Shown: positions 1 through 64,000, counted from the stretch's first letter. The stretch is DNA of 64,000 nucleotides from Thalia democratica (GCA_965202585.1 OZ241834.1:31000001-31064000); one strand, 5' to 3'. Made by a program: numbers and translations. The notes: generated by a model not told the origin, from the sequence alone.

Positions 1-25
1 TTGTCACAAATTTTGAATAACAAAC

Positions 26-2247
26 CTCTTCGACATCCAAGTCCAACGGCGCCGACGGTGCGTTGGTTATCTTGAGACTTTCCTCCGTCTCTTTCGGCAC
101 TCCGGCGCCGTACTTGTTGAAAGCGGTCACGCGGAAGTTGTACGTCTTCCCTTCGACCAGCCCCGATATCCTCACCACGGTCCTGGTGCAGTCCACGGAC
201 ACTTTCTCCCAGTGCTGCAGCACCACGTCGCACTTTTCGACCGCGTAGTGCGTCACCGGGGAGGCTCCGTCAAACTCGGGTTCCTCCCAGGCGAGCGTCA
301 CCGCCTCGGACTTGACCTCCTTGTAGACGATCTCGCCCACCCGGCCCGGAACGTCCTTGACGTCGACGGTGAACCTGAGGCTCCTCTTGCCGGCGGCGTT
401 CTCGATCGTCAGCACGTACTTGCCGGCGTCCTCTCGCTTTACTGTTTCGAGGAAGACGCTCGAGCTTCGGTCGTTGGTTGTTGTGACAGCGTCAGATGAG
501 ATCTCTTTGTTGTTATCTCTCGCCCAAGAAGCCGTCGGAGTTGGTAAACCGATAAACGAAGCTCCGATAGTGAGAGCTCCGCCGCTGTTCACAACCATTT
601 TGTTTTTGAAGTCATCGCCAAACACGAACTCTGGTTCTTCAAAGCGGTCAACAGCTTTAATGAAGTCATTGCATTCACAAGGTTGGCCGAGACCAGCTTT
701 GTTTATTGCTTTTACCTGTATTTCATATACCTGGTCTTCTTCTAGTCCTTCAACAACCATTTTACAGTCAGTTACTGGTGTGTTATTGACAACAGACCAC
801 TCAGCACTGTCTGTTGCGTCAAACTTCTTCTTGTCAACTACATACCCGGTAACTTCACTTCCGTTATCGTTCAGTGGAGCTTCCCAGTCAATTGTAGCTG
901 AGTTCTTTGATGTATCAACCAACCTTACAAGACATGGAGGTCCTGGTGGTAAGACTGGCATGCAACATTCGATCATAGGAGATCTGTTGCTTGGTAAGCT
1001 GACACCAGCAGCATTCTCGGCGTATACACGGAACTCGTAGAAAGCTCCTTCAATTAAGCTAGTGATACGGTACTGAGTATCTGTGATGGCTTCTTCGTTG
1101 CAACTAGCCCATCTCTCGCCTTTGTTTTTGAGCCTTTCAACGTGGTAAGCTGTTATTTTGCTGCCACCGTTGTTTTCGGGTGCGTTCCACTTAATGGTGA
1201 TCGAGTTGAAGTGAGTTCTGATTGCCTCCGGTCTGCTTGGAGCATCAGGTACATCAAATTGATATTTCGGCACGAAAGGCAGTGACTGTAAGTAAGGACC
1301 GACTCCGATCGAGCTAACTGCTTTTATTCTGAAGCTATACTCGTGACCTTCTTGCAGTCTGATCACTTTGACCGCAGTCGTCTCACTGTGGTCATTTATT
1401 ATTTCCCAGCTCAGTTTTGACGTGTCGCATTTTGAAACGATGTAGTACAAAACATCGGCACCTCCGTCACAGACAGGAGGACTCCATGAAAGCATACATC
1501 CCTTTGCTGTCACTTCTGTGAACTTTACAGGACCTTCAGGTGCTCCTGGTGTGTCAACAACAACCACATTTACTGCAGCTGATGCATCTCCACTGAGATT
1601 TGAAGCTGTAAGCTCGTATTTGCCTGCATCTTCACGAGTCACTTTTTCAATGACAAGTGTAGAAGATCCACGTGTTGTTGTGATGCAACTTCTTATGTCT
1701 TCAGCGATGTCTTCTGGACTGTTTACTTTTTTCCATGATATAATTGGTCTTGGTGAGCCTGTTACAAGCATTTCAACTTGTAATTGCTTACCTTGCTCAA
1801 TTTTGATCTTATCAGAGCCAGACACAACCACTTTAGGTACTTCAGGTGTATCTTTGAATAGAATTGGGCCACAAACATCAGATGATGGTCCTACAATTCC
1901 ACTCTTGTTACGTGCAGACACTCTGAACTCATACGAAGCTAATCTAATAAGATCTTCAACTTCATACTCACATTTGTCTACAACATCATAGTTGCATCTG
2001 ACCCAAACTTTGTCAATGCTGCATCGTTTTTCAACAATGTACATAACAATTGGAGAGCCTCCGTCAAGTTGAGGTGGTTGCCACTGAAGAACCATGGTAA
2101 GTTTAGTTATTTCAATGACTTTGAGGTCAGTAGGTGGTGAAATCGTTTCAGAAGCAGTGAAAGGCTGGCAGATATCACTTGGCTCGCTCAAACCAACTTC
2201 ATTTTCAGCAATAACTCGAACTTGATAAGACGATCCATGACTTAAAT
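26..2247 (-). CDS. TTN: Large exon, 2222 nt (D6b-D11 of R11, D1-D3a of R12); absent from the ORF track, probably because the frame runs off the window without a stop
   Basis: Acceptor cag| at 2248 (DLSHGSSYQVRVIAENEVG...), donor GAG|gtttgt at 25. Same length as, and colinear with, the exon at 5046-7267. Confidence 0.9.
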
Positions 2248-8200: not shown

Positions 8201-11200
8201 TATTGTCCTTTCAATATCAAATTAATAAAATCAGACTGGTTAAAAAAAGGTGTTTTTTTTTTAAATTAAGGCTCAGATAGCCGTGAAATTTTTAATACTT
8301 TAGATAAAACAATTGAAAACAAATAGGTACTTAAATGCACATTTAACAACACGTCTCCAAAATTTGTACTGTTTTTAAATAGAACTTTTTGTGTTAGAGT
8401 GCTTTAGGTAATAGCCTAGATTTTTAAAAAGCAAGTATAGGTTTCTTTAAGGCAAAGTTCATGTAGTCGTAAGATTTTTAGTACATTACTTGAAGAACAA
8501 GAAAAATCAAACAGTTTCATAGCTGTTAACAACATTTCTGCAAAGTATAAACTGTTTTTATAAAGAATTATTTGTTTTAGAGCGCTTTGTCAGGTCTGTC
8601 CAATAATAAAACGACTGTTTACTTAAAATGATGAAACCAAAAAAAGTTAAATCCGATAACGAAATACTTTTTCTAACCTTGTAGCGACGTTTTGCAGTGC
8701 AAGCTGTTACTGGTGACCATGATTCTTGTCCTATTGGTCGATAATGAACCACGTAACCAGTTATATTCGTTCCACCATTATCAAGTGGTTCTTGCCATGC
8801 AATTGTCACATTATCAGCTTCAATTGAATCGAAAATAATGCGACCGTGAGGTTGTGCGGGTACATCTGATTATAAAAACAAGGTAAACTTTTGAATTTAA
8901 AAGATAGTTGTTAATTACAAAATTAAACTTTATTCCAAGTAAATTTAAGTTACACCTTGGCATAAATTAAGCACACTTTTTAAATTTTTGGTAATACTAT
9001 TGTACTTTTTTATACTTTAATGACTCTATAAACTTCTTTGATAAGAAATGTAATAAGACTTATGATTCTTTTATTAACCTAGCACAAGAATGTTGATTTT
9101 GTAGCTGTTCGTTCCTCGTGAGTTAGTGAGCTTGAGGTTGTAAATGCCACTGTCACACCTTTGCATGTTTGCTGCCTGCATGCTAGCATGGTAGTTTCCA
9201 GAACTCATTTTGAAGTGTTTTCCAACTATAATTTGTTACAATTTTGTATGTAAGGTTTATTTTAGAAATTGTTCAAAAAATGTTGCATTTGCTAGTAAGA
9301 CTTTTCGTCATTCAAAAAATTGAATAAAAAAGAATGTTCTCTTATAATAAAAGTTTCATCTTAAAAGCTTTTCCAGTTCTAATGTTTAACAATTGCTTTT
9401 TATTATTTTATTTGATAAATTTTAATTCCAGTTCAAAGTTTTATGTATCTCAAAAAGTAATGAGTTAAACTACAGTTTTTCATATTTAACCACATAAATT
9501 TTTGATTCTAAACTGAAAACTTATTTAAATTATCTACAAGGCAAGCTAGAAATTAAAACAAACTGGTTTTGTTGTCCTTGCGAGACCATTCAATAGTAGG
9601 TTTAGGAAGTCCTCTTATCGGAACGGAAACGTTCAGAGTTGATGAAGCTTTCAAAGTTACCAGTTTGTAGAAAGACACATCAGCAGTAGGCTCTTCTACA
9701 AAAAAAACAGATAGTTTTGTGTAAAATTTATTTGAACTGACTTTTAATGTGAAATGTTTCAAACCTGTATAGTCCTTAGTATGAATGTTTGTTATTGCAA
9801 TGCTTGGAAGTCCTTGTCCAATTTCGTTTACAGCTTTTACACGAACATCGTATTTACAATCTTCGACTAAACTGCTGATTTCATAAACGAATTTCTCATC
9901 TATTTTACAGCTTTCATCGATAGCACTTAATTCACCGCTGACATTCCAGTCTTCTTCTTCAAACTTACTTACTTCTACAACGTATGAAGATACTCGACTA
10001 CCTCCATCGTATTCTGGTTTCTCAAATGATACTTTGATTGTTGTTTTTGTAATCTAAAATTATAGTTAGATATAAACATAACTTATTTAATAAAGAAAGA
10101 ATTAACTTGCTTTAGTTTAGTTTAACTTACTTCTTCAACAACTAAGTTCAATGGAGCCGATGGGGCGTTTGTTATCTTGAGACTTTCTTCTGTTTCTCTT
10201 GATACTCCTGCACCATACTTATTGAAAGCTGTCACGCGGAACCTGTACGTTTTTCCTTCAACAAGCTTGTCAAGCCTGTAAAATGTCCTTGTGCAATCTG
10301 AACACACGGTGGACCAGGACATCTGCAAAAGATCACACTTTTCAATGAGATATCCATTAAGCTCACAACAACCATCGAATTCAGGTTCATTCCAGCTAAG
10401 TGTTACTGATTCTGACTTGATGTCTTTATAGATAATCGAACCAACAGGACCAGGTACGTCAAGAACATTGACTTGTACACTAAGCACTTTAGTACCGGCA
10501 ATGTTAGACAATGTTACGAAATATTTACCAGAATCTTCACGACTGACATTTTCGATCAACAATGTTGAACTTGACTTTGAAACTTCTACAACAGCTTCAG
10601 AATTTATTTCATTATTGTTTCTGTGCCATGTAATGTTAGGCTTCGGTCTTCCTTCAAAGTTAACTTTAAGGTTCAATGTTTTGCCAGAAAACAAGGTAAT
10701 CAAAGATGAAAAGTTTTTATCTAAAATGAAATGCGGTTCTTCAGAACGATCGACTGCTTTTATAAAATCGTTACATTCACAAGGTTGACCTAAGCCTGCC
10801 GCATTAATTGCTTTGACTTGCAGTTCGTATACTTGGTTCTCTTCTAATCCATCTACAACCATTTTACAGTCTGTTACTGGTGTCTCATTGACAGTGAACC
10901 ATTCAGCACTGTCTGTTGCGTCAAATTTCTTCTTCTCAACTACATACCCGGTAACTTCACTTCCGTTATCGTTAAGTGGAGCTTCCCAGTCAATTGTAGC
11001 TGAGTTGTTTGATGTGTCAACCAACTTTACAAGACATGGAGGTCCTGGTGGTTTGACTTGTAGTCTGCACTCAATTGGTTTTGATACTGGACCTGGTAAG
11101 CTAATACCAGCAGCATTCTCTGCGTATACACGGAACTCATAGAAAGCTCCTTCAATTAAGCTAGTGATACGGTACTGAGTATCTGTGATGGCTTCTTCGT

Positions 11201-14200
11201 TGCAACGAGCCCACCTTTGACCTCTGTCCTTTAGTCTTTCAACATGATAACCAGTTACTTTGCTACCACCATTGTTGTCTGGTTCGTTCCATTTGATGGT
11301 GATTGAGTTGAAGTGAGTTCTTACAGGCTCTGGTCTACCTGGAGAACTTGGTACACCGAAACTGTACTTTGGAACGAAAGGTAGCGACTGTAAGAAGTGA
11401 CCAACTCCCGTAGCGTTTACTGCTTTTATTCTGAAAACGTATTCGTGACTTTCTTGTAATCTGATCACTTTGAATGACGTTGTCTCGCTTTGTGAGTTAA
11501 TAATTTCCCAGCTTAGTTTTGATGTGTCGCATTTTGAAACTATATAATACAAAACATCAGACCCTCCATCATAATTAGGAGGACTCCATGACAGCATACA
11601 TCCCTTTGCTGTGACTTCTGCGAACCTTACAGGGCCTTCAGGTACTCCTGGTGTGTCAACAACAACCACATTTACTGCAGCTGATGCATCTCCACTGAGA
11701 TTTGAGGCTGTAAGCTCGTATTTGCCTGCATCTTCACGAGTCACTTGTTCAATGACAAGTGTAGAAGATCCACGTGTTGTTGTAATACAACTTCTTACAT
11801 CTTCAGCAATATCTTCTGGACTGTTTACTTTGTTCCATGATACAACTGGTCGTGGTGTTCCTGTGACAAGCATTTCAACTTGTAGTTGTTTACCCTGTTC
11901 AATTTTGATTTTATCTGAACCAGAAACAACGACTTTAGGTAGTTCAGGTATGTCTCTGAATAGAATAGGGCCACAAACATCAGATGTCGGTCCTACAATT
12001 CCACTCTTGTTACGTGCAGAAACTCTGAATTCATATGAAGCTAATCTAATAAGATCATCAACTTCATACTCACATTTGTCTACAACATCATAGTTGCATC
12101 TGACCCAAACTTTGTCAATGCTGCATCGTTTTTCAACAATGTACATAACAATCGGAGAGCCTCCGTCAAGTTGAGGTGGTTGCCACTGAAGAACCATAGT
12201 CATCCTAGTAATTTCAATGACTTTGAGGTCAGTAGGTGGTGAAATTGTTTCAGAAGCAATGAAAGGCTGGCAGATATCACTTGGCTCGCTCAAACCAACT
12301 TCATTTTCAGCGATGACTCGAACTTGGTAGCATGTACCAGTTGTTAAATCTGCATAAAGTTTTCAAAGTTTTTAGTTTTATTAAAACATAAATAGTGAAA
12401 TGTATAAACTTTTACAAAAATAAAACTTTAAAAACTTAAAATTAAGTATTGTCTTTATTTTGTTGTACAACTAATTGTATATTTACATTATAGCGGCTAT
12501 AAATCTACTAAAAAGTTTCGAATCTTTTAAATAATCTTAAGTCTTAAATTCTTTGAACAAATATAAAACTTCATTTAAGCACTGTGAATACTTGTTAATT
12601 GCGTGACTCAGTTTTCTGAAAGATCGCGCTTTGTCTTTTTCAAATTTTACAAATTATTTTTCAGGAAGACAAAATATTATCTAGATTTAAGTAATGAAGA
12701 TGTTTGCAAGGCAAACAAACCTCTTAATGTAAAATCGCATCTGTTAGTTGAAGTTTTGTTTGCACGAATCCATTTCATACTTCGTTTTTCTTTGTATTCT
12801 ACAAAATACCCGTGTACTTCAGGTCCTGATTTAGGGGCTTTCCATAAAACTCTTGCTGTTTCTTTGGTGATTTGACTGATCTCTGGTTTTCCAGGCTTAC
12901 TAGGCACAGCTGAAAATAATTTTTAGATTAAAATTGTGTTTTACACTTTTAAAGTTAAGTTGAAATAAAATGTGTAGTTTTAAACTTTTAAATTTTCAGA
13001 TACTTTTTTGTTCAGAATATTAAATTTAAGATATTTTTCAAACTTTAATGTCAGTAAAACAATAATTAACAATAATTTCTTTCTTAAATTACTAATGTTT
13101 ATTTTTACGTTGGTGCTATATTAGCTATTGAAATAATATACAAACCAATTTTAATTCTCGTTTACAGTTTTTAATGTTGAGTTAAAATTTATTGGAACTT
13201 AAAAAAGTACATTAAAGTTCAAGTTTCAATTCAAAGAATTTTCTATTACATTTTTGAAATAAAACTATTTGATACTAATATGAAATTGCTTACAGAATGA
13301 ATATTCAGGAGTGCATTTTCCTGATACTAATGGTTTTCCGCAACCAATAACGTTTTCAGCTGCTACTTTGAAGTAGTAAGTTTGTTGGTGTTGAAGTTTA
13401 GTCACCTGAAACAAAATAAAAAAGTGTAAATTAATATTTCTATTGTTATGTTTTGAATATTTTACCTTGTAGCGACGTTTTGCAGTGCAAGCTGTCACTG
13501 GTGACCACGATTCTTGTCCTATTGGTCGATAATGAACCACGTAACCAGTTATATTTGTTCCACCATTGTCAAGTGGTTCTTGCCATGCAATTGTCACATT
13601 ATCGGCTTCAATTGAATCGAAAATAATACGACCATGAGGTTGTGCGGGTACATCTGATTTTGTAATATATGTTTAACTTAAGTAAACAAGTTGATCAGTT
13701 TAATGTTTTTTTTGAATAAAAACAAGTAGCTAATTAGCAAGTAAAAACAAGTAGCTACCTAGAACTTTGACTTTGATTTTATAGGTGTTTTTGCCAAGAG
13801 CATTTGATACAGACAAAGTGTAATTTCCACTGTCTTTTCTCTGCATATCTTTGATACTCAGGTTCGAATAAACCCCACTGTACTCAACAGTTGCTCGGCT
13901 CAATTCTGTTAGATAAAATAAGTTTCATAATACCTATCACAATTAGTATAAGATGAAGATCAATATTTTTACAAAACTTTGTCTTTTTTGTTTATACCAA
14001 AATAGTTAATACCTTTGAGATCGTTGTTTTCCAAGGCCCACGAACACGTAGGTTTCGGACTGCCATAGACAGGTACAGATAACTGCAAGCAAGATCCTGC
14101 TTTCAGTGTGATAAAATCGCAACTTGAAATGTCCGCAGTGGGAAGTTCTTTAAAAAGTGCTTTCTTTTAGAACTAACTAGTTTTCTTGTAATATAAGATT

Positions 14201-41200: not shown

Positions 41201-44200
41201 CCCCATCCAAGCTCTCATCCTCGTCTTTCACCCAAACAACGTCGGGTTGGGGGGAGCCGGACACTTTGGCGACGAGGCTCGTCTTCTTGCCGTGCGCGAC
41301 TTCGTTCAGCGGCGGGCTCTCGAACTCCACCGTCGGCTCGTACGGCACCAGCCTGAAGCGCACCGGGCCGCACACCTCGGACGGCTCGCTCAGCGCGCCC
41401 ACGCTGTTCCTCGCGCTCGCCCTGAACTCGTAGTCGAAGCCGTACACCAGCCCGGTGATCTCCTTCTCGCACTCCTGGTCGAAGTCGTAGTCGCAGTTGT
41501 TCCACGACCCCTTCGGCAGCTGTCGCTTCTCCAGCACGTAGTCGCGTATCGGGTGGCCCCCGTCCTTGTGGGGCGGCGACCACGCGACCAGTATCGAGCT
41601 GCCGGTGATCTGCAGGACGCGGAGGTCGGTGGGCGGTCCCACGGGCTCCATGGCGACAAAGTAGGCGCTGGGAGGGCTCGGGTTGCTGAAGCCCGCCTCG
41701 TTTTCGGCGACGACGCGCACCTGGTACTCCAACCCGTGGATGAGTTCTGCGTTTTATAATGTTAGAAATTTAGAAAAGCAAGTAGTTGTTAGATGAGTCA
41801 AAAGTTTATGGTTTTTTAAGTAATCATTTATTTCAGACAGATGTATTAAGAATAATTTAAAACTTAACAATCGGGACCGATACCTGAGTGAGAAAGTTGA
41901 AATTTACAAAAATTACAATACTTTACACTTTTCATCATACTGCATTATTTAATTTTTTTTCAGCTACAACAACAAACTTTTGATTTTGTACGAGCTCTTG
42001 GTGACGGGCCTGAAGTTGTCGCGCTGCCACAAGATGGTGCTCTTCTCCTTCCTCTCAACGTAGTAGCCTGTCACTTGAACGTTAGAGGGCGCTTCGTTCC
42101 ACGTCACTAACGCCCGCGAATCTTTCACGTTGCTGACAATCGGTCTTTCCGGGCTCGGCGGTGGGCCTTAAGTTTGTTTTTTAATTACTAAAATGACTGG
42201 TATTAATTGATAGAATACGGTATTTTGGAGCAATCTGGTTTAAAAAATGTTTTAAAGTGGTAATTCTACTTATAGTGCAGTAACTAAATGATTAAACTTT
42301 AAAGTTTCTGTAGGACACAAAAAATAAGTTTAACTTTACTTTCTTCTGAAACTTTTAAAACTTTGTTTTAAATCACGTTCATATTTTATTTAATAAAATT
42401 CTTTTAATTTTTCAATCAACTTACTGAATGAGTAATCAAGGTAGTGTGGTTTGGACACAAGAGGTTCACTTATGCCCATCGCATTTTCTGCCATTACCCT
42501 GAACAAGTATGTTGAGTGCCTTTTCAGTTTTGGAATCTGAAAGTTAACATTATTAGATACTTATCATTAGCACAAGTTTTATTATAATTATCTATTTTAT
42601 CTCTGTAGTTTTTCGTAACAAGTAGGTTTAATTGTTGTTTAATAGCTACTTATCATTAAACCAATTTAGTTTATGAAAATCTAGAATTTTTTTCAAACAT
42701 GTTGTGTAAGGCTTTATAGGTTATTTATATTTTGCGATGCATAAGTTCTATTTTCTGCGTGAGTTTTTGGATTATTGTTTGCTTATAAATAGACTTTTAT
42801 TTTTAATTTTGTTTCAGCGTAGTTTTATATTAACAAACCGCGTCGACTCACCTACTTGGGCTAGATTAATTTTTATGCATTCGTAATAGACAAGTTTAAT
42901 CTGTTCTATTACAACTCAGGTTATTTCTGAACTCATCCGTTACGATTTAGTTGTTGGTTATTATTAGTGATGTACCGGACCCGGATCCGAACTTTTTTTT
43001 CATATCAAGATCCGGCCGGATCCGGATATCAGACAAAATGGCAATATCCGGCCGGATCTAGGCCCGGATAGTTAGTCCGGTACATCATTAGTTATTATTT
43101 GCATATTTCGCGCCAACTCACCCTGTAGCTGATCTTAGAGGTGCAGGCGGTGACGCAGGTCCACGATTCGTTCTTGACGTCCCTGTACTCCACCACGTAC
43201 CCGATGATGTCGGTCCCCCCGTCGTCGAGGGGATTGGCCCACGCGATCGTGACCGAGCTGACGTCAGTTTTGAGCAGCCTGATTGGTCCGTAAGGCTGAG
43301 CTGGCACGTCTTGGGAAAAAGTTTATTTTTATTGAAGTCATTGGTTTTGTTGAGTTATAAAATGTCTTCTCATTTCTTGTTACTATTTTCTTGTAAAAAA
43401 ATTTATGGAAAACACGTATAATTAAAAAATTATAAAACTATTGATTCACTTGACGTTTTCATTTTGCTCTATTGTACTACAAACATACATGAAACGATTA
43501 CTTTAACATTTCAGTTTAACAATGTTTTTTTTTTCTATCAATACTTTTATTTTATTACAGCTTGATTCAGCTCTTACCGAGAACTTCGACGTGAATGCTG
43601 TACTCGTTAGTGCCGACGTCATTGGTCAGTTTTATTTTGTATTCACCAGTGTCGCTCCTTTGCACTTCGCTCATCGCTAGGTAGGCGTGAGTGCTTGTCG
43701 ATGACGTAAGCGCTCGTTTCACGTCTGAGAAGTTTTTTAAATGGTTTTAACGTCTTAAGCGTTTTGTTAGATTACACACGATGTGGTTTTTATATATCTA
43801 GTATTTAATATCTTGTTATGTTGCAAACAGCGTTCAACAAAACAACACGACGAGACTGTTTACTTGACTTGAAAATTTTATCAGACGTACGTTTCTATTT
43901 TCTATAAAATATATTCTAGCAATTAATCCTTTTACAAACTTATTTGTTTACTTTTTTTTGTAATTAGTTTAGATTAAAAAATAACTATTAAAAGCAAATT
44001 TTATAAACAAAAGCAAAAAAAAAAACCTTTGGCTAGGACATTTTTAACTGTCCAAGTAATCTTCGGCTTGGGATTTCCATAAATAGGTACGGTAATGTCT
44101 AATCTATTATTTTTCTTCAAAACTAATTTGCTCGATCCTGAAATATTTGCTGAAGGCGGCTCTGTGTTAATAAAAATGTAAAAATTAGAAATAAACACAA

Positions 44201-47200: not shown

Positions 47201-50200
47201 GCAATCCTGTGTGAGGTGAAAGTTTAGGTAAAGTGAAGTTTTTCCTTCATCTATCTTAAACTGCTCGCGTGTTTCACTTTAAAATTCTAGAAGCTTTTAA
47301 ACATCGTTACTTTAAAAACATTGTTTTAGTTTTAGTTTTTAATTTCCAAAAATAGAACTGTCTGTCCATCAAAGCTTAAAACCAAGTCTTAAAATGAAGT
47401 TCAAAATCATTATAATACACGAGTCGTCAATAGATTTTTAACTTTGTTTAAATTTCACCTTTAAGCTTGTAAGTGGTGGCGACGAATACGTTCTTGTTGC
47501 TCCTCGTCCAAGTGATGGAGTTCTTCTCCTTGTACTCGACGTGGTACCCCGTGACGGGCACGTCGGACTTCAGCGGTTGCCAGGTTACCTGGACGGACCT
47601 GGCCGTTACCTGGTCAACAGACGGACGGTTTGGCTGGGGTGGAACAGCTGGAAAAAATATGTTCGTTTTACTAAAAGTTTATTTTTTAATTGTTCTGTTT
47701 TTAATATTGTTAAACTTAGTATTAATAAAAATCATTATTTTTTTTTATACATCCAGCTGGGCAAAAATTAAAAAATAATTACTTTATCTAAAACTGTCTA
47801 TATTTTTTTATTTTTGAAGGGCAAAATTTTAACTATCTATTATCTTTATAAAACAAGTATACACTTTTTGGACAACCAGGTCAACTTATGCTTATAATTT
47901 GATTAGTTGTTTGTTTTATTTAAACTTGAGAAACAATCATAAATCTCTATACTCTAACTATTTTTATATACTAATATTTTCACTATAAAAAACTAACAGT
48001 AAGCGTAGTTAGCAGTGACGCGTTTCGAAACGACTGCTTTCGAAACGCCCATTATGTTTTCCGCCATGACGCGGAACTGATAAGAGTGAAGTTTTTCCAA
48101 GTTGTTCACCTGTTATTTGTTTATTCAAAGTTTCCGTTTTGCATTGTTTGTTTTCAAAGAAATTAAAAAACAAAGACCATGATGTTTCCGGTCATAGTAA
48201 AAGAAAATACATTTTTTTTTTAATTAATTTATATAAACTTACATTTTGTTTTTCATCTGCTGCTTATTTTTATTTATTAAAATAGTTTGATATTTTTAAA
48301 AAGCAATTTTTAAGAAATTTTTACAAAAAATTTATGAAAATATTTTTCAGTCAGTACATCAATGAAACACAGCAAAATAAAAACTCATCGCACCTTGATG
48401 GTGCACTTGGCCGTGCACGAGTTGACGGTGGACCAGGACATGTTGCCCACCTCCTTGTAGTCGACCACGTACCCCGTGATGTCGGTCCCCCCGTTGTCCT
48501 TGGGCCGTTGCCATGCCAACGAAACGGAGGTGGCGTCCACCGAAACTATTTGAAGCTGGCTCGGCTTGCCAGGCACGTCTGTTGAGAATGTTTTTGTGTG
48601 AATTAGTCATAGGATTTTTTTTACAAAGTGCAACGTCTTGAAGTTGCTGGAAATATTAGTTTGTGTTTGTATTAAGAGAAAAAATTGTAAAAGTTATCTA
48701 ATAAAGTAAAAACTGCTTAACTGTAGAATAATTTTATAGTAAAATAACTTAAAAAACCGTTTTTAATCAGTCACGCACAAAAAATAAAAGTTTTTAGGTC
48801 GCTACACTTTTATGGCTTTGCAAATCAAAAAGACCATAGTGCTTTGATTAATTTGAAAAATACTATTGACACTACAAAAACGTATTAGAAATTCATTTTT
48901 TGACTTAAAATAAAAATACGTTTTTTGCTTAAAACTCTTTTCATTGAAAATGTCCCTGATGATTATTTTACTTAGCATTTAATTTTTTTACATTAATGTT
49001 TTACCTTCTGAATTTTTCTTATAACTCTTTTAAGATACAAGTAAACAAAAAAATATACTGATATATTGGTTTTTTTACTAACTGGCTATTCAAATTAAAG
49101 TTTAATATTAAATGAAAATACGTTTGAAATATCAAGGAACAATATAATAAAGTTAGCTAACAAAAGTACTAATCCTTGTAGTTAATGATTCTCTATCTTT
49201 AGAAATCTATCTTTTCTAATACATAAACTAACCAAATAATACTTAAAACAACATTTTGTTATTAAGTTGTAATAACTAGATCTACATACAAAATAAACTC
49301 TTAAGCAAGAAACTATTGAAATATTTTTAATTTTTTCAAAGGTGGATTTGTCAAAGTAATTTTAAAGTATTCAATATACGTTAAAACTAAATATCAGTTT
49401 GCAGATAAAATCAAAAAAATTATGCAGATTTTTATGCTTATTCTGCATAATTTTGGGACGATTTTAATTAGTTAGCCATTTTATTAAAGTCTTATCTTAA
49501 ACATGTTTTTAAAGTTTCATTCTTTTAATTGTAAAAAGAATCTTATGTGTAACAGCTTATGTAACCGGCATGGTTCATAATGTTTCAATGTTAAAAGTAT
49601 TTTTGCTTAACAATGCATAAATCAATTAAACTTTTTTTCTTTAACTTGTTAAATTAATTCAGTTGAAGGAGTTAATAACTTTTTTCTAGTTTTGATAAGT
49701 AAAGATATTGCTATATACTTTGATATTAAATAGAAAATTTTTATCGTTGTCGACCTCAATGCTTATCTATCTACCTTTAAAAATTAATATGTTAAAGTGT
49801 TCTCAAATATGAGTCAGGGTATTAAGAATAGCTAGTATTTTTAGTGTTAGGTTATAAGGTAAATTTAAAAATATTCACTGAAATATGTTTATACTGCATA
49901 GAAGAGTAGGTTATGATGTAAATATTTTTAATAACGTGCTTGATTTATCATACGGAGTATTAAAGTTATTTGTTATAGTTTTAAAATGTTTTTAATCAAA
50001 ATACAATCAGGTACAGAAATAGATGCCTTACTTGAACTAAAAAAAAAGTTTAACTAGTTTTAATATGTGCATAGTTTTTAAAACTACAGTATTAGACTAC
50101 TTAGAATTTTTTCAAATGGGGTCAGTAATTATTTTCAAAAACACCCTTGTATTCGAAACCTGCTATTAACTACTAACGCTTCATCTAGTTAGTCAGCATT

Positions 50201-53200
50201 ATAAATAATCGTTATAAGTTTTTTACTTGGAAACGTAAAATAATTTGACTTTGGATTGTGTGAAAGTTTTCAGAATAGAGTAACTATTCACTACGTAACT
50301 GTATGACCTGCACTATAGACTGGTGTTTCTAAACGTGTGTAAGTATATTGTAACGTGCGAAGGAAATAATTTATTATAAACAACTACAACTAAACATATA
50401 AAAGGGGATAATTAATTTCGTATAAGTTAATTTATTGGCTAATGTCTAGTGTATACCATATTATTTCACCAAGTTGTTGTGTAAACTTCTATATAGAGAA
50501 CCACTGAAATACAGTGTATAAAACGTATCTAATTCTAAAGAAAATACTTAGTAACGTTTAAAGTTATTAAAAGTAGGGTAGATTAAAAACTAGACTAAGT
50601 GTTTTAATTGGATAAAACTTAGTTATAAAACGTCTAAAACAACCTTAAATGCTAGACAATGGAATACAAATTACTTCGTATATTTTTTATTCTAAATTAT
50701 TTTAAACCAGTTTTACCCAAACTCATTTTCATAAATGCCCATTTACTAACTATTGGCCCTTAATAGTCAAAATTGAACCATATTGGCCATAAACTTTGGG
50801 AAACCCTTACAAGAGCCCATCAAGGTTAAATAAAAATGAAAACTTTTCTTTACTTTTAAAATATTAGTTTTACACAAAAAGGGTGTATACTACTATGTTA
50901 TCGATTGAAAACATAATCGCAAATTAATAAAAAGATCTTAGTCTTTATTTAATTAACTGCACTATGTTGTCTAAATATAGGATTTTACGAAAATTCTAGA
51001 CTTAACTTAACACTGTAATGAAATGAATAAATTATCTTAATTTGTAATTAGCTTTCTTAATTTTACTGTTTGTTGCATGATATTATCTCGTTGTGTTAAA
51101 CTTCATCTGTTTAAAGAGATTTTAGTATTTAAGCCTTAATATGTCTTTAACTTTTACTTTTATGAATTAAAAAGTTTTTAGTGATTGTAGGTATTTTATA
51201 ACTAAGTAGTATTCATGATTTATGATTAAGTAGTAGTCATTAGTTTGAATAGAGGATAACAATATTTGTTATAAAAATGGAGTCAATCAAATTAAGAGTT
51301 AAGTCTTTAAATTTTACATCGACGTTTGAATTCCAGTGTTATGGTAGTAAGTTTAAACCTGGCAGTTTTTATACGAGTGTACACATAAACTTTAAATATA
51401 GTAAAAGCGTATCTAAAGCAAGATTGAACTATTTTTAAATTTGTTTTTAAAAGCTAATAGGTCGTACTTAATGACAAGTTTGAATTAGTAATTTTCAAAC
51501 TTATGGACATTATAATGAAAAATTTTCGTAGCAAAGGTGTGTGTACTAGGCTTTTAACATGTTTTGTTCTTCACTTATTGACTGTGCTTCGATTTTGAAA
51601 AATTAAAAAACTAAATATGACAAACAGGAAGGTAAGGTTTGGTCTTAAGCAACACATTTAAAAACTTTGCCAATGTGTTTTAAAGTAATGTATAAAACAT
51701 AAAAAGCTATGCAGGTTTTTATTTTATTTACATACTTATTTTGTGTAGTGTTTTTTAAAGTATTCAATTTACAATTCAATAAATTTTTAACCTGCTAATT
51801 CTAAAAGGAAAATTATTAAGAATTTTATCAAAGTTATGATTTTATATTTGTTGTTTAAACTATTTTCAAAAACGTTTATAGTATATAACTTTTAAGTAAA
51901 ATGTTATAGTATTGCTTTTGAAAAGCTTTAAAAACGCTAAGAAAGAATGAAAGAGTTGTTCTTTGAAACTGTATGTTAGTTGGAATGATATCTTGTATCA
52001 ATAAAAGAAATTAAAAAGATAATTAGGAATAAATCTAGTGCAGTAACATAAGTGTATTAGCTTAAAGGGCGTTGAAGTTTTTAACCACTAAAACAGTACA
52101 CAATATTTTAGCAATGTTGAAATATTTGTAGTTGAGTTAAAGCAAAATTTCAGTGGATTTTAATTTTGTACAATTATTAGTGTCATTTTAAAATTTAGTT
52201 TTAACCTAGGTATTTAAACTCAGCCAATTAGAAATTGCAAAAAATCTACTTGTTTTTGTTTAAACTTTAATGTGTCAATACTGTTACACTGACGTAGTAG
52301 TCAACTATTACCAACAAGTTTGTAAAAATCTGTATAAATACGTGTTCTTGTGATCTTATGTTTTTATGTGGTAAAAATATTTGCCTTTATTACATTTAAT
52401 GTTTGATTTGTTTCTTATCTAAAATTAATCTTAGCAGAATGTTCATATTAAAACAAAACGGAGAAAAATAAAAATACAGTAAAAATTGTATCTCGATAAA
52501 AAACTATTGGAAGTTATTACTTTCATAGTAGCATATTGTTTTAAAATTTTTAAAGGTTTTGTACTAGTTTAGATACTTGATGAAAAAAATTTATAAAACT
52601 TTGCTAAATTTAAAGCTCAACTAAGGCATAGTTTTGCTTTAAAAAAGGTTATTTTTTGTTCCACGTTTTTACTCGTTCGTTCGTAACAATTAAAGACTGA
52701 AACTTTACATAGCGTTTTTTGGCTTAAAGTTGTGATAAAAGTAAGTCTAGTTCGATACTTTTGTTATTTGACATGACTGAAAAAGCTTGTATCCTTATTG
52801 AATGGTTTTTCAACTGTGTAAGCAAGTTTTTTATCAACACTTTTTTATTAATAAAGTTATTTAACTTAAGATTATATTCAAATTTTGACCCAACAGCACT
52901 AAAGCCTGCAATTATTTTTTGTTGGAAAAAGTTTTTTCAAATTGAAGTCACAAGGCAACATTAAAGTATAAGTTTTTATTTTATGCAGGTTAATATTGTT
53001 TTCAGTTTTAAATGTCTTAAAAAACTCTTATTTAAAAAATAATGTAAAATTAAGGCAAAATTGGTACAGTTTTGCTATACTTTTAATAATGTTATTGATT
53101 AACAGTTTATTAAATTAGTGTAAGCTGATAATAATATAATACTAAAATAATTTTGCACAGTTTTTAGCAGCTAAACATACTATATACAACCTATTTTTTA

Positions 53201-56200
53201 TAAATTAATTAGGTAATTTTAAATTTGTAGATGCGTTGTTTGGTCATAACACTAAAGTTTTTAAATATACGTACTTAATTAGGGTACTTTAGAATTTGTC
53301 TCTAAGCTAAAGTGATTTGTCTTAATTGATATTTTTCACTTGTGTGATATTCCTATAAATAACTTACTAATTCCTACATCAAAGGATATGAAAGCTGGTT
53401 AATAAGTGTAAGGTTATAAATGTAGTAGATGATGTAGATGTAATCCTTACCTTAATACTAAATTCTTACAGTATGCTATAATTACTATTTTCGTAACAGT
53501 GTCGGTCTCTTGAAACTTAATTATGTAACTTTCATTAGTCAATAGACTTTTAGTTTCCTAAAATTAACAGCATAACTTTGTCTAAAAGCTTTAAAATTCA
53601 TAATGTTTTGTTAAACTGTACAATAAGTTTAAGATAGTTTAGTTTTTTTTTTGTAACTTTAAAAGAAACTTTAAAATCAACATACTTTATGTGTTATAAA
53701 TGTATTAAAAAATATTTTCACTATGATCTTATAAGTAAAAAGTTTAATCTAGTTTTTTTCATGATTTTAGATATTCAAAGTATTCTTAGTAAAATATATG
53801 TTTTCTACTTCACTCTAGTTTTTATTTCTGACTAGCAAAAATACACTGAACATAATGTTTAAGTACAGAGTTGTTTGGTTAAGACAAGTAGTTTTAACCA
53901 TAAAAAAGAAAACGTAAACATTCAAATGGTATTGTCTTAAGGGTTTTAACCTAACTAAAAATTATTTTAAATATGTTCTTAGTTTACACACCAACTTTAT
54001 TTTTTACTTTTAAATCTTAAGTTCAGTTTAATTTGTTTTAAATCTCTATATTTTTTAGGACTTAAAAAAACTTGATAGTTTATCTTACTTCTAAGCATAA
54101 TTTGACTTATTTTTATCTTGCAACCCAATTTAAATTATTAAATTTTGCATCTCATCTATTCATGCTTAAAAGTAAATAGTTTAAAAAAATTTTAATAAAC
54201 ATTAGTGTAAAACCTTTTTGATTTTGGTGACCATGGAAACCGTCCGGCAGGTTATCATATCAAGTGCACTTATGAGTTACAATTAATTAAAAAAATATTT
54301 AAAAAGTGTGTCTTTTGCTTGGAAAGGTGTGCACTGTTACCACTCGAAAGCTGCTGCTGCGGACGACTTACCATGGTCACCCGTTACTAATTATTTTTTA
54401 TCTAGGCAGCTAGTTGTGATTAAATAAAAAGAAACAGTGCAAGTGCTTTTGGTAAGCCGTCCTCAGGCGAACTTGTTGTGGTTTATTGTCAGTACAAGTG
54501 AACGCAAACAAAAAAAACAAAATTTTGCATATATATATATATAAGGTAAAAGACAGTGTTTATCGTGTGGAGCGCCGTAAAATCCGACGGAAATTTAAAC
54601 TCAAACAGCATTCCGTGATAAAAATAAATAAAAAGTATTAAAAAAAAAAAGGCTGACTAAATTAAAAAGACATACGTGCTGCCCTGAATTAAAACAAAAT
54701 AAAAACTCTCATGCAAATAGAATGCTTGTTTTCGTTCAAATTTCCCGCCAAATTGTTTTTACGCGCGCTTTGACATACCGAGCACGTCGACTTGCAGCTG
54801 CCCGTGGGCCGAACCCTTTTTGTTGGTGGCCACCAAGTGGTAGTTTCCGCTGTCCTTTCTCGTCACCCGCGACTTCTGAACGGTCGAGATCGAATTTGCA
54901 GTTGAAATGCGAACCTCGTCGTCATCTGAAAAAGCGATGTGTTTTAGTTGAAAAAAAAGTAAAACAAACTTAAAGTATGCAAGGCCTTGCAACGAAGTTT
55001 GATTGCTTGTACGAAATTAAATCAAAAATCTGTATTTTAATTTATTCTTACGATTCTTTACACTCACCATCCAAGTCTCTGCCTGACGCCTCCCACTTGA
55101 CTTCGGGTTTGGGTTTGCCTTCCACCGCCACGCTAACGTCCAACTTGGCTCCGGCCTTCAGCAAGATCCGCTTCAAGCCCCGCATGTTGACCGTCGGCGC
55201 TTCTGCTCAATGAAAATTGTTCAGTTAAACAAACTGTTTGTTTAAAAGTCAATAAATAAATTTATACATAACTGTAGTTAAAATTTATTTATTTAGATAA
55301 AGTTTTGGCTTCAAATCATTTTATAGCATATTTTAGTTAGAGGCTTTTGTTTTTCAGAATACCAATAAGGATACTAACCAGAGTCGTCGAAGGTCTTCAC
55401 TCCGATCAGCGGTCTGCTCGGCTCGCCGTCGCCGATCGAGTTCACGGCAATCACCCTGACGTCGTAGCGGGAGTTTTCGACGAGGTCCGTCACGGTGCAC
55501 TGGAAGGTGTTTTCCCTGACCTGAGCCTTGGTCACCCACTCTTCCAGGGTGGTTGGCGACACTTGCACGATGTAGGAGGTTATCTTGCTGCCTCCGTCGT
55601 GCTCCGGACGCTTCCAACACACTTTGATTGTGGTCAGAGAAACCTGAGAAAGACATTCTTTTGAAATAATATCTAAAACTATCTGATTTTTTTAGTCATA
55701 AACATATTAATCACTTTTAAATTCGAACAATTTTTTAAAAATCTACTGCGGCAAAAACGGCAAGTTTTTTAATATTGTGCAAATCAGAATAACAGTCATT
55801 AGCGAGTGCATATTTTTCAACTCGAAACAAACCTCGATCAGTTCGAGGTAGACTGGCGGATACGGCACCTGGGTGGCTTTCACTATCTCGCTTTCGCGGC
55901 TCACCCCCTGCCCGTACTCGTTGACGGCGGTGACGCGGAACACGTAGCTCTTGCCCTCTTCCAGCTCCGTCGCCTTGTAAAAGGTCCTGGCGCAGTCCTG
56001 GCATATCTTGGTGTACCTGCTGCTCGAAGCCTCGCGCTTCTCCACGACGTACTCGCTCACCGCCGAGCAGCCGTCCATGTCCGGCTCGGTCCAGTGGACC
56101 ACCACCGAGTCGATCTTGACCTCCTTGCAAACGATGGGTCCGACGTGGCCCGGGGTGGCAAAGACTTTCACCGAGTAGGTGATCTTCTTCATGCCCAACT

Positions 56201-59200
56201 CGTTAGCGATAGTCAGCTGGTACTTTCCTCTGTCCTCTCGTCTCGCGTGAGGGATCGTGAGTGTAGCTACGCCGTTTTCGCTGTCAACGACGGCCTCTTT
56301 GTTCAAATCTCCGCCCATTCTCATCCAGCAGGCCTCGGGTTCCGGCCTTCCGTTGTACCTCACCGACAGTTGCAACTGCTTGCCCTGGTGTACTGACACG
56401 TGAGACTTGAAGTCGGAATCGACGATGAACTCGGGCTGCTCCGGCCTCTCCACCGCCTTTACAAAGTCGCAGCACTCGCAGGGCTCTCCGACTCCGGCGC
56501 TGTTCACCGCTCGCACCTGCACCTCGTACACGCTTCCCGCTTCCAGCTCCTCGATGACCATCTCGCACTTTTGCACCGCTCTCTCGTTGACGCGGTACCA
56601 CTGCTCGGTGTCGGCCCTGTCGAACTTCTTCTTCTCGACGAAGTAGCCGGTGATCTCGCCGCCGTTGTCGTTCAGCGGCGGCTCCCACACCACGCTCGCC
56701 GACCGGCAGCTGCTGTCCACGAGCCTCACGACGCACGGCGGGCCCGGGGGCGTCGTCGGCAGACGGCACTCGATCAGCGGCGAGGTCTCGCTCGGGTTGC
56801 TCTCGCCCGCCTCGTTGACGGCCGTGACCCTGAACTCGTAGGAGGATCCCTCGCTGAGTCCCGTGATCCGGTACGTCAGGTCGTCGACCGGCTCCTCGTT
56901 GCACCGGACCCACCTCGAGCCGCGGTTTTTCAGCCTCTCGACGTTGTAGCCGACTATCTTGCTGCCGCCGTCGTTCTTGGAGGCGGCGTAGGAGACGGTG
57001 ATGGAGTTGATGTGAATGCGGATGGCCTCGGGCTTTCCGGGCGCGTCCGGCTTTCCGAACAGGTTCTTTGGTACTAGTTTTGTTGACAGTAGCGCGGGTC
57101 CGGTGCCGTGGTCGTTGATGGCGTTCACCCTGAAAACGTACTCTCTTCCTTCGATCAGCTTGGTGATCTTCCACGACAGTCCTTCCCACTTTTCTTTCAC
57201 CACCGTCCACAGCAACTTATTGGTGTCGCACTTCGAAACGACGTAGCCTCTCACTTGCGCTCCTCCGTCGATCAGCGGCGGCTTCCACGTGAGCACGCAG
57301 CTGTTCGACGTCACAGCGCTTATTTCCAGCGGGGCTTCCGGCTTGCCCGGCGTGTCCATCACCAAGACTTTCACGCTGGCCTCCGCGTCGCCCTTGTCGT
57401 TTGAAACCTTGACCTTGTACTCGCCCAGGTCTTCCCTGGTCACCTTGTCCAGCAAGAGCACGCACGAGCTCCTGTCGCAAGAGATCGTGCTCCTGACGTC
57501 TTCCGCCAAATTCTTGCCGTCGCGGCTCCAAACCACGTCCGGCTTCGGCTTGCCGCTGAACTCGGCCTCCAGCTGCAGGCACCTGCCCGCTTGAACCCTC
57601 AGCGTCTTGTCCTTCGGCAGCACCGTCCTCAGGTTGATGAAGACCTTGGGCGCTTCCGGCACTATCTTGTTCAGGATCGGGCCGCACACGTCGCTCGGCA
57701 CTCCCATCGTCCCGCTGTTGGTCTTGGCGGTGACCCTGAAGTCGTAGCTGTACATCCGGACCAGCCCGCACGCCTCGTACTCGCACCTGGTCACGTGCTC
57801 GTAGTTGCACTTCTGCCACTTGCCGTTGGGCGACTGCCTCTGCTCGATGACGTAGCTGGCGACGGCTCCCGACGACTCCTCGGGAGCGTCCCACTCCAAG
57901 TTGACGCTGCCCAGGTTGATCTCGACCACCCTGAGGTTCTTCGGCGCGTTGATGGCCTTGGCGGCGGTGAAGGCGTCGCAGTGGGGGGACGGGTCGCTCT
58001 GGCCGGCCTCGTTCTCGGCGATGACTCTGACCGTGTACGAGATTCCCTCGTCCAAGCCTGATTTTGTGTTAGTTTGATAAGTGTTTGAAGTATTACTGAT
58101 GTGCTTAAAAAGAAAGCAAACGTTTTGTTAGTATTCTATATTGTATTTGTTTTTTGTTTTATTTTGTAAGGGTATTGAAAGTTAAAATATTAAAGCCATA
58201 TTCACTAAGTACCATCAAGGTAAACTTAAAATACACGTACATTTGTTTTGCACCAATAATTAAAATGAAAAATTACCTTTGAGCATGTAGTTGCTCTTCG
58301 ATATGAGCTTGGCGGTTTCTCGCTGCCACAGCAGAGTGTTCAGCTGCTTCTTTTCCACGTGGTAACCCGACACCTGCACGCCCGATGCTGGCGTGGACCA
58401 GCTTATGAGTGCGGTGTTGTGGGTTATCTTGCTCACCGTCGGCTTTCGCGGCGACGGTGGTGGTGCTGAAGTGAAAAATAATATTTAAAACTGTTTGGTT
58501 AGTAAATGTGTTAACAACAAAATAATAATAAGAAATATTTAGAAGCTAATGACAGCATGTCTTAAAACACAATTTGGTGTTTTAGATTATAGTATATTAA
58601 ACTATTCAAGTTACTCCAGGTCAAATAACTTACTAATCAACTTAAAAGCATACAGAAAACAAGTGTAAAAGTATATTTGCTGTAAAACAATGATAGTTCA
58701 AAGCGTTATTTACCGAACGGGAAATCGGTGGTGATCGTTGACGACACCAGCGGCTTTCCGCAGCCGTACGCGTTCTCCGCCACCACTCTGAACTGGTACG
58801 CCTGCCTCTTCTTCAGCTTCTTCACCTTGCACTGCATCTTCGTCGTGCAGATGTTGACGGTGGACCACGACTGCTTGCCGTACTCGCGGTAGTCCACGAT
58901 GTACCCCTGCACGGGCGAACCGCCGTCGTCGTTGGGCTTGTACCAGGCGATCGTGACGTTGTCGATGTCGATCGACTTGAACTGGATCGGTCCCATGGGA
59001 GCGCCCGGAGTATCTGTATCAATTTCAAGTTTAATGAAATTTTTCATTAAACTTGCTATTTTGATTTCTAAATTTCAAATATTCAATTCAAAAGTTCATT
59101 TATTTAGTCCTAAATTAATTTTACTCCTATTCAAAAAGAAAATTAACGTTATTATAGTGTTCTTGTTTAAATCTTGTTTGTTTTTTGTATCTAATTTCAC

Positions 59201-64000: not shown

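Follow-up and report, generated by a model that had tools for sequence, protein, structure and literature searches.

In vertebrate titin, the C-zone comprises 11 super-repeats (PMC10665226, PMC5648799), each of which matches the ~43-nm myosin repeat (PMC5648799, PMC7427331, PMC10665226), and deletion of two of these repeats in the mouse results in shorter thick filaments (PMC5648799). The super-repeat is a unit of eleven domains, and the array is preceded by a D-zone and followed by the order Ig-Ig-Fn3-Fn3-Ig-Ig-Fn3, the kinase and the M-band; moreover, a mega-exon of ~5,750 codons encodes a partial Fn3, five units and an Ig-Fn3 pair. In amphioxus (Branchiostoma lanceolatum XP_066264227, XP_066263902), D- and C-type repeats are likewise followed by Ig-Ig-Fn3-Fn3-Ig-Ig-Fn3-kinase. 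Twitchin and projectin, which are thick-filament-associated chains of Ig and Fn3 domains, have the same kinase-proximal end. Nebulin, another giant protein of modular build, offers a conceptual parallel only: its number of repeats is proposed to determine thin-filament length, its fold is unrelated and its partner is actin. In the literature that we searched, which did not extend to the Ciona paper of Hanashima et al. 2012, we found no C-zone repeat number for a tunicate, nor any count except 11.

Here, we analysed a stretch of 64,000 nucleotides of the salp Thalia democratica (31000001-31064000 of OZ241834.1, in an assembly of 802 Mb), which is referred to as the window throughout. An ORF scan of the window yielded 11 long open exons of 737-1070 codons that lie ~5 kb apart, namely ten of ~740 codons and the end of a longer one. 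The only Pfam families in these exons are fn3 and I-set/Ig, and all long ORFs with Ig or Fn3 domains in the window are located on the minus strand, as is the titin gene to which they belong. For domain mapping, 100 kb were added on each side of the window, and Ig and Fn3 profiles made from the locus itself were used to scan all minus-strand open frames of the resulting 264-kb region. Short exons were recovered with a lower length cut-off, and split domains were joined in frame across GT-AG introns, the joins being scored against the profiles.

The C-zone extends in gene direction from window coordinate 94979 to -15172 and consists of 21 eleven-domain units (C1 to C21) with a total of 231 domains, all of them complete. 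Every unit shows the order Ig-Fn3-Fn3-Ig-Fn3-Fn3-Fn3-Ig-Fn3-Fn3-Fn3. Since 231 consecutive domains are in perfect register and none of the exons contains a stop, this pattern is not due to chance. The window holds units C8 to C17 as a whole, as well as parts of C7 (cut at 64000) and C18 (cut at base 1; Table 1), exactly as stated in the preliminary description, which had counted ten complete units plus a partial one at each edge. That description had also expected the array to continue past both edges with the pattern of a C-zone and not of a D-zone, and to contain at least 12 super-repeats, more than the vertebrate 11. Both expectations were borne out: six and a half units lie upstream and three and a half downstream, where the array is followed by the Ig-Ig of the P-zone, and the count, now carried through to the D-zone on one side and the titin kinase on the other, amounts to 21 copies rather than to 11 or fewer.

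Upstream of the C-zone, we found, in gene order, the I-band Ig domains, the start of the A-band with Fn3 domains, and a D-zone of about six 7-domain repeats, mostly within one exon of 3,223 codons; this number is approximate because the profiles missed some domains. In the same area, an open frame of 904 codons without Ig or Fn3 domains is present at 96395-99106. Downstream, the C-zone is followed by Ig-Ig-Fn3-Fn3-Ig-Ig-Fn3, a protein kinase, encoded by at least two exons with Pkinase positions 1-151 and 161-242 in the two that follow the last Fn3, and the M-band Ig domains. All of these elements, from the D-zone to the M-band, are arranged on one strand of one contig. The closest named matches of the locus are a titin-like protein of Branchiostoma and the Titin of vertebrates and Ciona savignyi. 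The locus is thus titin (connectin) of the chordate type with an A-band C-zone, and its 21-repeat C-zone is a departure from the known 11-repeat state of the same super-repeat. We also considered whether the salp protein is of the twitchin/projectin type. This assignment was rejected, as the eleven-domain unit is kept throughout and only the kinase-proximal end is common to both; the twitchin-like matches examined contain Ig-Fn3-Fn3 and Ig-Fn3-Fn3-Fn3 blocks with an order of at most 7 domains, but never the eleven-domain unit. As a whole, the explanation that we consider probable is that the window represents the central part of a single titin gene of a pelagic tunicate, with 21 super-repeats in its C-zone.

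Table 1. C-zone units and selected exons and introns in the window, in gene direction (window coordinates)
Feature	Coordinates	Strand	Remarks
C7	61489..64000	-	Cut by window end; domain map; 1:1 orthologue of unit 5 in the ascidian-like mega-exon P0003 (unit tree)
C7 host exon	60790-66747	-	Second half of the ancestral mega-exon
C8	56481..61407	-	First unit of the expanded clade; Ig1-Fn3-2 still at the end of the mega-exon
Large exon C8/9	55833-58055	-	Orthologue P0239, 87% identical
C9	45630..56399	-	Domain map
C9 intron	48579-54778	-	6.2 kb, AT-rich, between Ig4 and Fn3-5 exons
C10	40182..45548	-	Domain map
Large exon C10/11	39525-41746	-	Orthologue P0292, 84% identical
C11	31166..40100	-	Includes a 4.8-kb intron (34759-39524); last two Fn3 already of the low-GC3 young sequence type
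C12	26524..31081	-	First of six homogenised low-GC3 units; Ig1 90% identical to Ig1 of P0200 (related organism)
C13	21176..26442	-	Domain map
C14	15579..21094	-	Domain map
C15	10782..15497	-	Domain map; region matched by DNA contigs of three public runs and by four metatranscriptome contigs
Large exon (example)	10132..12349	-	One of the 737-743-codon series
C16	5700..10700	-	Exons, with large exon 10132-12349, colinear with P0207 ('merc')
C17	680..5618	-	Domain map
C18 start (Ig1, Fn3-2)	1..598	-	Cut by window start; unit runs to window coordinate -3570

The 21 units differ in how they are encoded. Whereas C1 and C2 are composed of many small exons, C3 to C7 together with Ig1 and Fn3-2 of C8 are contained in two exons of 3,817 and 1,986 codons. 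These correspond to the mega-exon of vertebrate titin, which in the salp is split once by a 1.5-kb intron. Units C8 to C19 are each built on one module of ~5 kb with about seven exons: the Fn3-3 exon, two exons for Ig4, two for Fn3-5, one for the first part of Fn3-6, and the large exon of 737-743 codons. The large exon encodes the end of Fn3-6, Fn3-7, Ig8 and Fn3-9 to Fn3-11 of one unit and then Ig1, Fn3-2 and the initial residues of Fn3-3 from the following unit. Ten of the large exons are located in the window and the eleventh just downstream of it, and all eleven are open. The phases at the module borders are the same in all units: the large exon ends at a phase-0 donor, and the acceptor of the Fn3-3 exon is likewise of phase 0. 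Finally, C20, C21 and the P-zone are encoded by two long exons.

The units likewise differ in age. C1 to C7 and C21 show a mean per-domain identity of about 30-36% to all others, as compared to 42-50% among C8 to C20 and 78-87% among C12 to C17; C18 is about 55% identical to the latter. In line with these values, a maximum-likelihood tree of the salp units places C8 to C20 in one clade (100/100), in which C12 to C17 are nested (100/100). For comparison with other species, the P-zone was used as query against a representative library, in which the Branchiostoma lanceolatum pieces and the proteins P0002, P0003 and P0006 proved useful; no protein longer than about 7,750 residues was retrieved from it, so that the comparisons rely on partial titins. 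P0003 (ENA, 5,756 residues) comprises a partial Fn3, five units and Ig-Fn3, i.e. the content of the salp's two long exons (3,817 + 1,986 codons) combined. It is colinear with and 63% identical to a titin fragment of Ciona savignyi, as opposed to about 45% for units out of register, and we therefore take this relative as an ascidian-like tunicate. P0006 (ENA, 2,504 residues) matches the last A-band exon of the salp from end to end, including the exon border within the kinase. At its locus (L024), the end of a mega-exon, which has 5,766 codons and is 80% identical to P0003, is followed by one set of small exons and the last exon. The small exons have exactly the split points of the salp (an exon for Fn3-3, Ig4 split near profile position 35, and Fn3-5 and Fn3-6 split near position 60), but occur as a single set. 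Hence, one unit lies between mega-exon and last exon in the ascidian-like relative, as opposed to 13 in the salp.

In a tree of all units, C3, C4, C5, C6 and C7 each pair one-to-one with a unit of P0003, as does C21 with the final unit of P0006 (support of at least 100/99 in each case). The sister of the C8 to C20 clade (100/100) is the one intervening unit of the relative (96/91). This topology indicates that twelve units were gained in the salp lineage after the split. The tree thus agrees with the proposal of the preliminary description that the excess arose by tandem duplication. Nine lineages predate the expansion, namely C1 to C7, one founder of C8 to C20, and C21; for seven of these, the ascidian-like relative has a corresponding unit, C1 and C2 lying outside the comparison. 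If two units precede its mega-exon as in the salp, the C-zone of the relative would contain 9 units. Amphioxus, whose last C unit groups with C21 of the salp, has 3 + 4 C-type units in two annotated pieces, which is a lower bound as the gene model is split. The caveat that related titins might already have the same count therefore does not apply to the ascidian-like tunicate and amphioxus, and applies only in part to salp-like sequences, which share some of the expansion. In vertebrates, there are 11 units as compared to 21 in the salp, 13 of which descend from one ancestral unit via the ~5-kb module. The five units of one sampled vertebrate mega-exon (P0002) and one salmon unit form a clade of their own, which suggests that the unit numbers of vertebrates and salps grew independently. 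A second ENA locus (P0010/L025/L026), of which 20 kb were walked, contains six D-type and three or more C-type units, encoded by small exons; it was discarded for comparison, as its layout is unlike that of both the salp and the ascidian-like relative.

The six central units C12 to C17 deserve separate consideration. Their Fn3 domains and Ig8 are 78-96% identical, as opposed to 57% for Ig1 and 46% for Ig4, and dS along the unit ranges from 0.18 (Fn3-3, Fn3-7, Ig8) up to saturation (Ig1). Ig1 of C13 and C17 differ at 3 of 246 bases, all of them synonymous (98.8% identical DNA), those of C14 and C16 share 93% DNA identity, and the remaining Ig1 pairs are 41-57% alike. Moreover, the young sequence type extends into C11 and C18, where it covers one or two Fn3 domains at the end of the unit. 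We infer from these patterns that C12 to C17 are a gene-conversion mosaic, in which Ig1 and Ig4 keep older identities, and that the Fn3 domains may make the six units look younger than they are. A simple recent burst of six units does not account for Ig1 and Ig4 being 41-60% alike when the Fn3 domains are 78-96% alike, for the rise of dS from 0.18 to saturation along the unit, or for the Ig1 types of C12 and C14/C16, which have counterparts with 88-90% identity in P0200 and P0207, two proteins from elsewhere. Furthermore, P0199, P0203 and P0269 fall outside the salp's own young clade in the tree, a position that does not by itself date the duplications. The same units are distinguished by a GC3 of 0.28-0.36 as compared to 0.70-0.89 in the rest of the gene, the boundary tracking the young sequence type and not the unit borders. 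Two readings of the low GC3 are possible: weaker codon selection in exons that are used less, or a regional bias of mutation or conversion.

The available sequences also bear on the splicing of these exons. The protein P0207, which bears the source tag 'merc' that we take to stand for a marine transcript catalogue, is one contiguous sequence of 703 residues with Fn3-10, Fn3-11, Ig1, Fn3-2, Fn3-3, Ig4, Fn3-5 and Fn3-6, the domains being 84-99% identical to those of young units. Its sequence runs colinear with the C15/16 large exon followed by the small exons of C16, six exons in a row, and thus crosses five predicted junctions. Tblastn pieces with 82-94% identity were obtained for five of the six exons (11240-10110, 9229-9080, 8866-8669, 8152-8051 and 7890-7768), and those that reach exon borders end 1-3 bases from the predicted splice site. 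As the introns contain stops, this protein cannot derive from unspliced DNA. The public runs that match the window comprise sets of DNA contigs as well as one metatranscriptome, the latter with about 97% identity; one metatranscriptome contig joins the end of a C17-type Ig4b exon (4133) to an Fn3-5 exon at the predicted sites. Thus, at least one young-type unit appears to be correctly spliced, in a catalogue protein from another source that we read as transcript-derived. A homologue search with the C11/12 large exon for transcripts that include or skip C12 revealed nothing new.

These data bear on the possibility that the 21 units are an adjustable set, from which individual muscles or life stages skip modules, with C12 to C17 as a facultative cassette. 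With symmetric phase-0 modules, skipping of any whole number would leave both reading frame and domain order intact, and the identity of the border phases in all units fits this scheme, as does the restriction of the low GC3 to C12-C17 and the short adjoining pieces of the same type, which would be expected for rarer use. However, P0207 contains young exons spliced to young neighbours, which are thus included at least sometimes, dN/dS in C12 to C17 is as low as would be expected of used exons, and no skipped junction was observed, in data hardly able to show one. On balance, we regard a facultative use of these units as unlikely.

If all 21 units are used and each extends over one myosin repeat, the C-zone would be predicted, from its ten extra repeats, to exceed that of vertebrates by ~430 nm in each half filament and, provided that titin rules as in the mouse, the thick filament to measure ~2.4-2.5 µm. 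The literature searched gave neither a thick-filament nor an A-band length for a salp, and no usable thick-filament lengths for tunicates. The extra repeats could also be expressed without lengthening the thick filament, titin not being a strict ruler in this animal, for example because its C-zone protein would be a separate thick-filament component of the twitchin/projectin kind, would overlap with itself or would extend past the filament tip. The body-wall muscle of salps is striated, unlike that of ascidians, and is thought to be secondarily so (PMC6589888); its filament design may therefore differ from that of vertebrates. Moreover, the Ig-Ig-Fn3-Fn3-Ig-Ig-Fn3-kinase end is common to invertebrate twitchins. 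On the other hand, the mouse deletion supports a ruler role for the same type of repeat (PMC5648799), and the perfect eleven-domain register over 21 copies, together with purifying selection at each position, argues for a periodic partner. We consider this uncoupling of repeat number and filament length to be improbable, slightly more so than the facultative use of modules.

The copies themselves were scrutinized with regard to assembly and decay. At the DNA level, large exons of the younger units show 84-87% identity. In alignments between young modules, exon identity amounts to 84-91% across 75-94% of the exon bases, in contrast to the introns, of which only 2-11% of bases align and which differ in length. 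For the large exons of the young block, we obtained dS values of 0.25-0.87 and dN/dS ratios of 0.09-0.20; with respect to the adjoining C11/12 and C18/19 exons, synonymous sites are saturated. Contigs with unit-specific introns are present in public DNA sets from two independent samples, with 0-3 differences. In addition to the orthologues listed in Table 1, P0204 matches the C19/20 exon with 76-93% identity depending on the domain, and P0200 is 77% identical to the C18/19 large exon. The presence of such single-unit orthologues in other marine sequences indicates that the older part of the expansion is common to at least one related species. P0200 furthermore joins a C18-like Fn3-7 to Fn3-11 with a C12-like Ig1-Fn3-2, a junction that is absent from this genome and suggests another order or number of units in a related organism. 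As judged from their sequences, all copies are intact and under purifying selection. Although tandem arrays of 5-kb units are classically prone to assembly errors, a duplication artefact or dead pseudo-exons as the source of the excess units can be dismissed as highly implausible, given exon DNA that differs by 9-16% between copies, unalignable introns of unequal length, 231 domains without stop or frameshift, dN/dS of 0.09-0.20, unit-specific contigs in a second sample, and single units with orthologues in other organisms.

Returning to the explanation that we favour, a single titin gene with 21 super-repeats, the exon layout also points to how the array may have grown. The amplification copied the ~5-kb module of about seven exons. 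The founder was the unit that followed the ancestral mega-exon of ~5,750 codons and preceded the last A-band exon, and it was amplified to 13 copies. The large exon occurs only in expanded arrays; its 5' part is the counterpart of the start of the ancestral last exon (end of Fn3-6 to Fn3-11), and its 3' part, which encodes Ig1 and Fn3-2 and carries the donor site, that of the ancestral mega-exon's end. It thus has the appearance of a hybrid of mega-exon end and last-exon start, i.e. the product expected from unequal crossing-over. This exon anatomy suggests unequal crossing-over as the growth route, which would have taken place repeatedly between the Ig1-Fn3-2 segments of successive units. Owing to the identical border phases in all copies, each such event gains or loses exactly eleven domains. 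Later, gene conversion would have homogenised the six central copies. Moreover, there are signs at the level of sequence that the unit number still varies among salps.

Taken together, the locus displays the stepwise growth of a ruler by an exon-defined module, putative unequal crossing-over and gene conversion, and this growth bears on the origin of the 11 repeats of vertebrates. Combining these elements with the skipping discussed above, one may conceive of a tunable ruler of 43-nm splice-symmetric modules, the number of which shifts between species by unequal crossing-over and within an animal by skipping of C12 to C17. We put this forward as a speculative extension with little likelihood of its own; if true, thick-filament length would be set differently per muscle, life stage or species. 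The ruler idea itself rests mainly on one engineered deletion of two repeats in the mouse (PMC5648799), whereas the salp offers a natural gain of ten. A chordate with ten more repeats, together with the unexpanded titin of an ascidian-like tunicate for comparison, hence constitutes a natural test of the ruler. If the ruler model is right, salp A-bands would exceed the vertebrate 1.6 µm by ~0.86 µm, and their length would follow the unit number from species to species; should this not be the case, the model would need revision.

The coding sequence of six adjacent eleven-domain super-repeats in the C-zone of salp titin, C12-C17, displays a GC3 of 0.28-0.36, whereas values of 0.70-0.89 prevail in the remainder of the gene. 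The limits of this block track the homogenised sequence type and do not follow exon or unit borders. Moreover, the first Ig domains (Ig1) of C13 and C17 differ at 3 of 246 bases, all of these differences being synonymous, and those of C14 and C16 share 93% identity, whereas the Ig4 domains are only 43-49% alike within the same pairs. To judge from these comparisons, the combination of close Ig1 and distant Ig4 domains looks like the result of patchwork gene conversion within the array.

Features of the salp titin gene in window coordinates; negative values and values above 64000 lie in the flanks
Feature	Coordinates	Size	Remark
Low-GC3 block C12-C17	680-31081		
Block edge	about 31166-31700		
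Block edge	-3000 to -3570		
Ig1 of C17	5373-5618		
Ig1 of C16	10458-10700		
Ig1 of C14	20852-21094		
Ig1 of C13	26197-26442		
Intron in Fn3-5 of C15	about 13406-13465	~60 bases	in frame, without stops
Long intron	34759-39524	4.8 kb	very AT-rich, GC 0.22-0.33
Long intron	48579-54778	6.2 kb	very AT-rich, GC 0.22-0.33
Intron in Fn3-5 of C6	66719-68262	1.5 kb	divides mega-exon
Open frame	96395-99106	904 codons	minus strand; no Ig or Fn3 match

Counterparts of the large exon, which recurs in the salp gene and spans two neighbouring units, are present in other sequences. P0199, a 734-residue open frame on a 2,782-bp NCBI contig, is 69% identical to the large exons of the young units C12-C17. Its database label reads 'MAG: fibronectin type III domain-containing protein [Bacteroidota bacterium]'; the DNA almost certainly belongs to a salp-like animal and was mis-binned into a bacterial metagenome genome. 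P0200, on a 2,730-bp ENA contig, is a large exon of a related organism, in which a C18-like block comprising Fn3-7 to Fn3-11 (81-94% per domain) is joined to a C12-like Ig1 (90%). This junction is absent in the Thalia democratica genome, a hint that the order or number of units differs in a relative.

A second chordate titin locus (L025/L026; ENA ERZ22157276, contig ctg13658l) contains one 3,571-codon exon that carries six seven-domain D-type repeats together with the first eleven-domain C-type unit; after it, small exons hold at least two further C-type units. Salp titin is laid out differently, and so is the titin of the ascidian-like relative.

In the salp, the D-zone exon is separated from the first C-zone exons by an 8-kb gap, within which the tabulated open frame is located.

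Both the ascidian-like relative and P0002, a vertebrate sequence, retain the ancestral mega-exon of ~5,750 codons unbroken, whereas it is split in the salp; the intron within C6 has the appearance of a gain in a giant exon. Neither tandem arrays nor long open frames were found in the two long introns, which contrast with the remaining introns of 60-850 bases. Retention of the short intron in C15 would add ~20 residues without truncating the protein.
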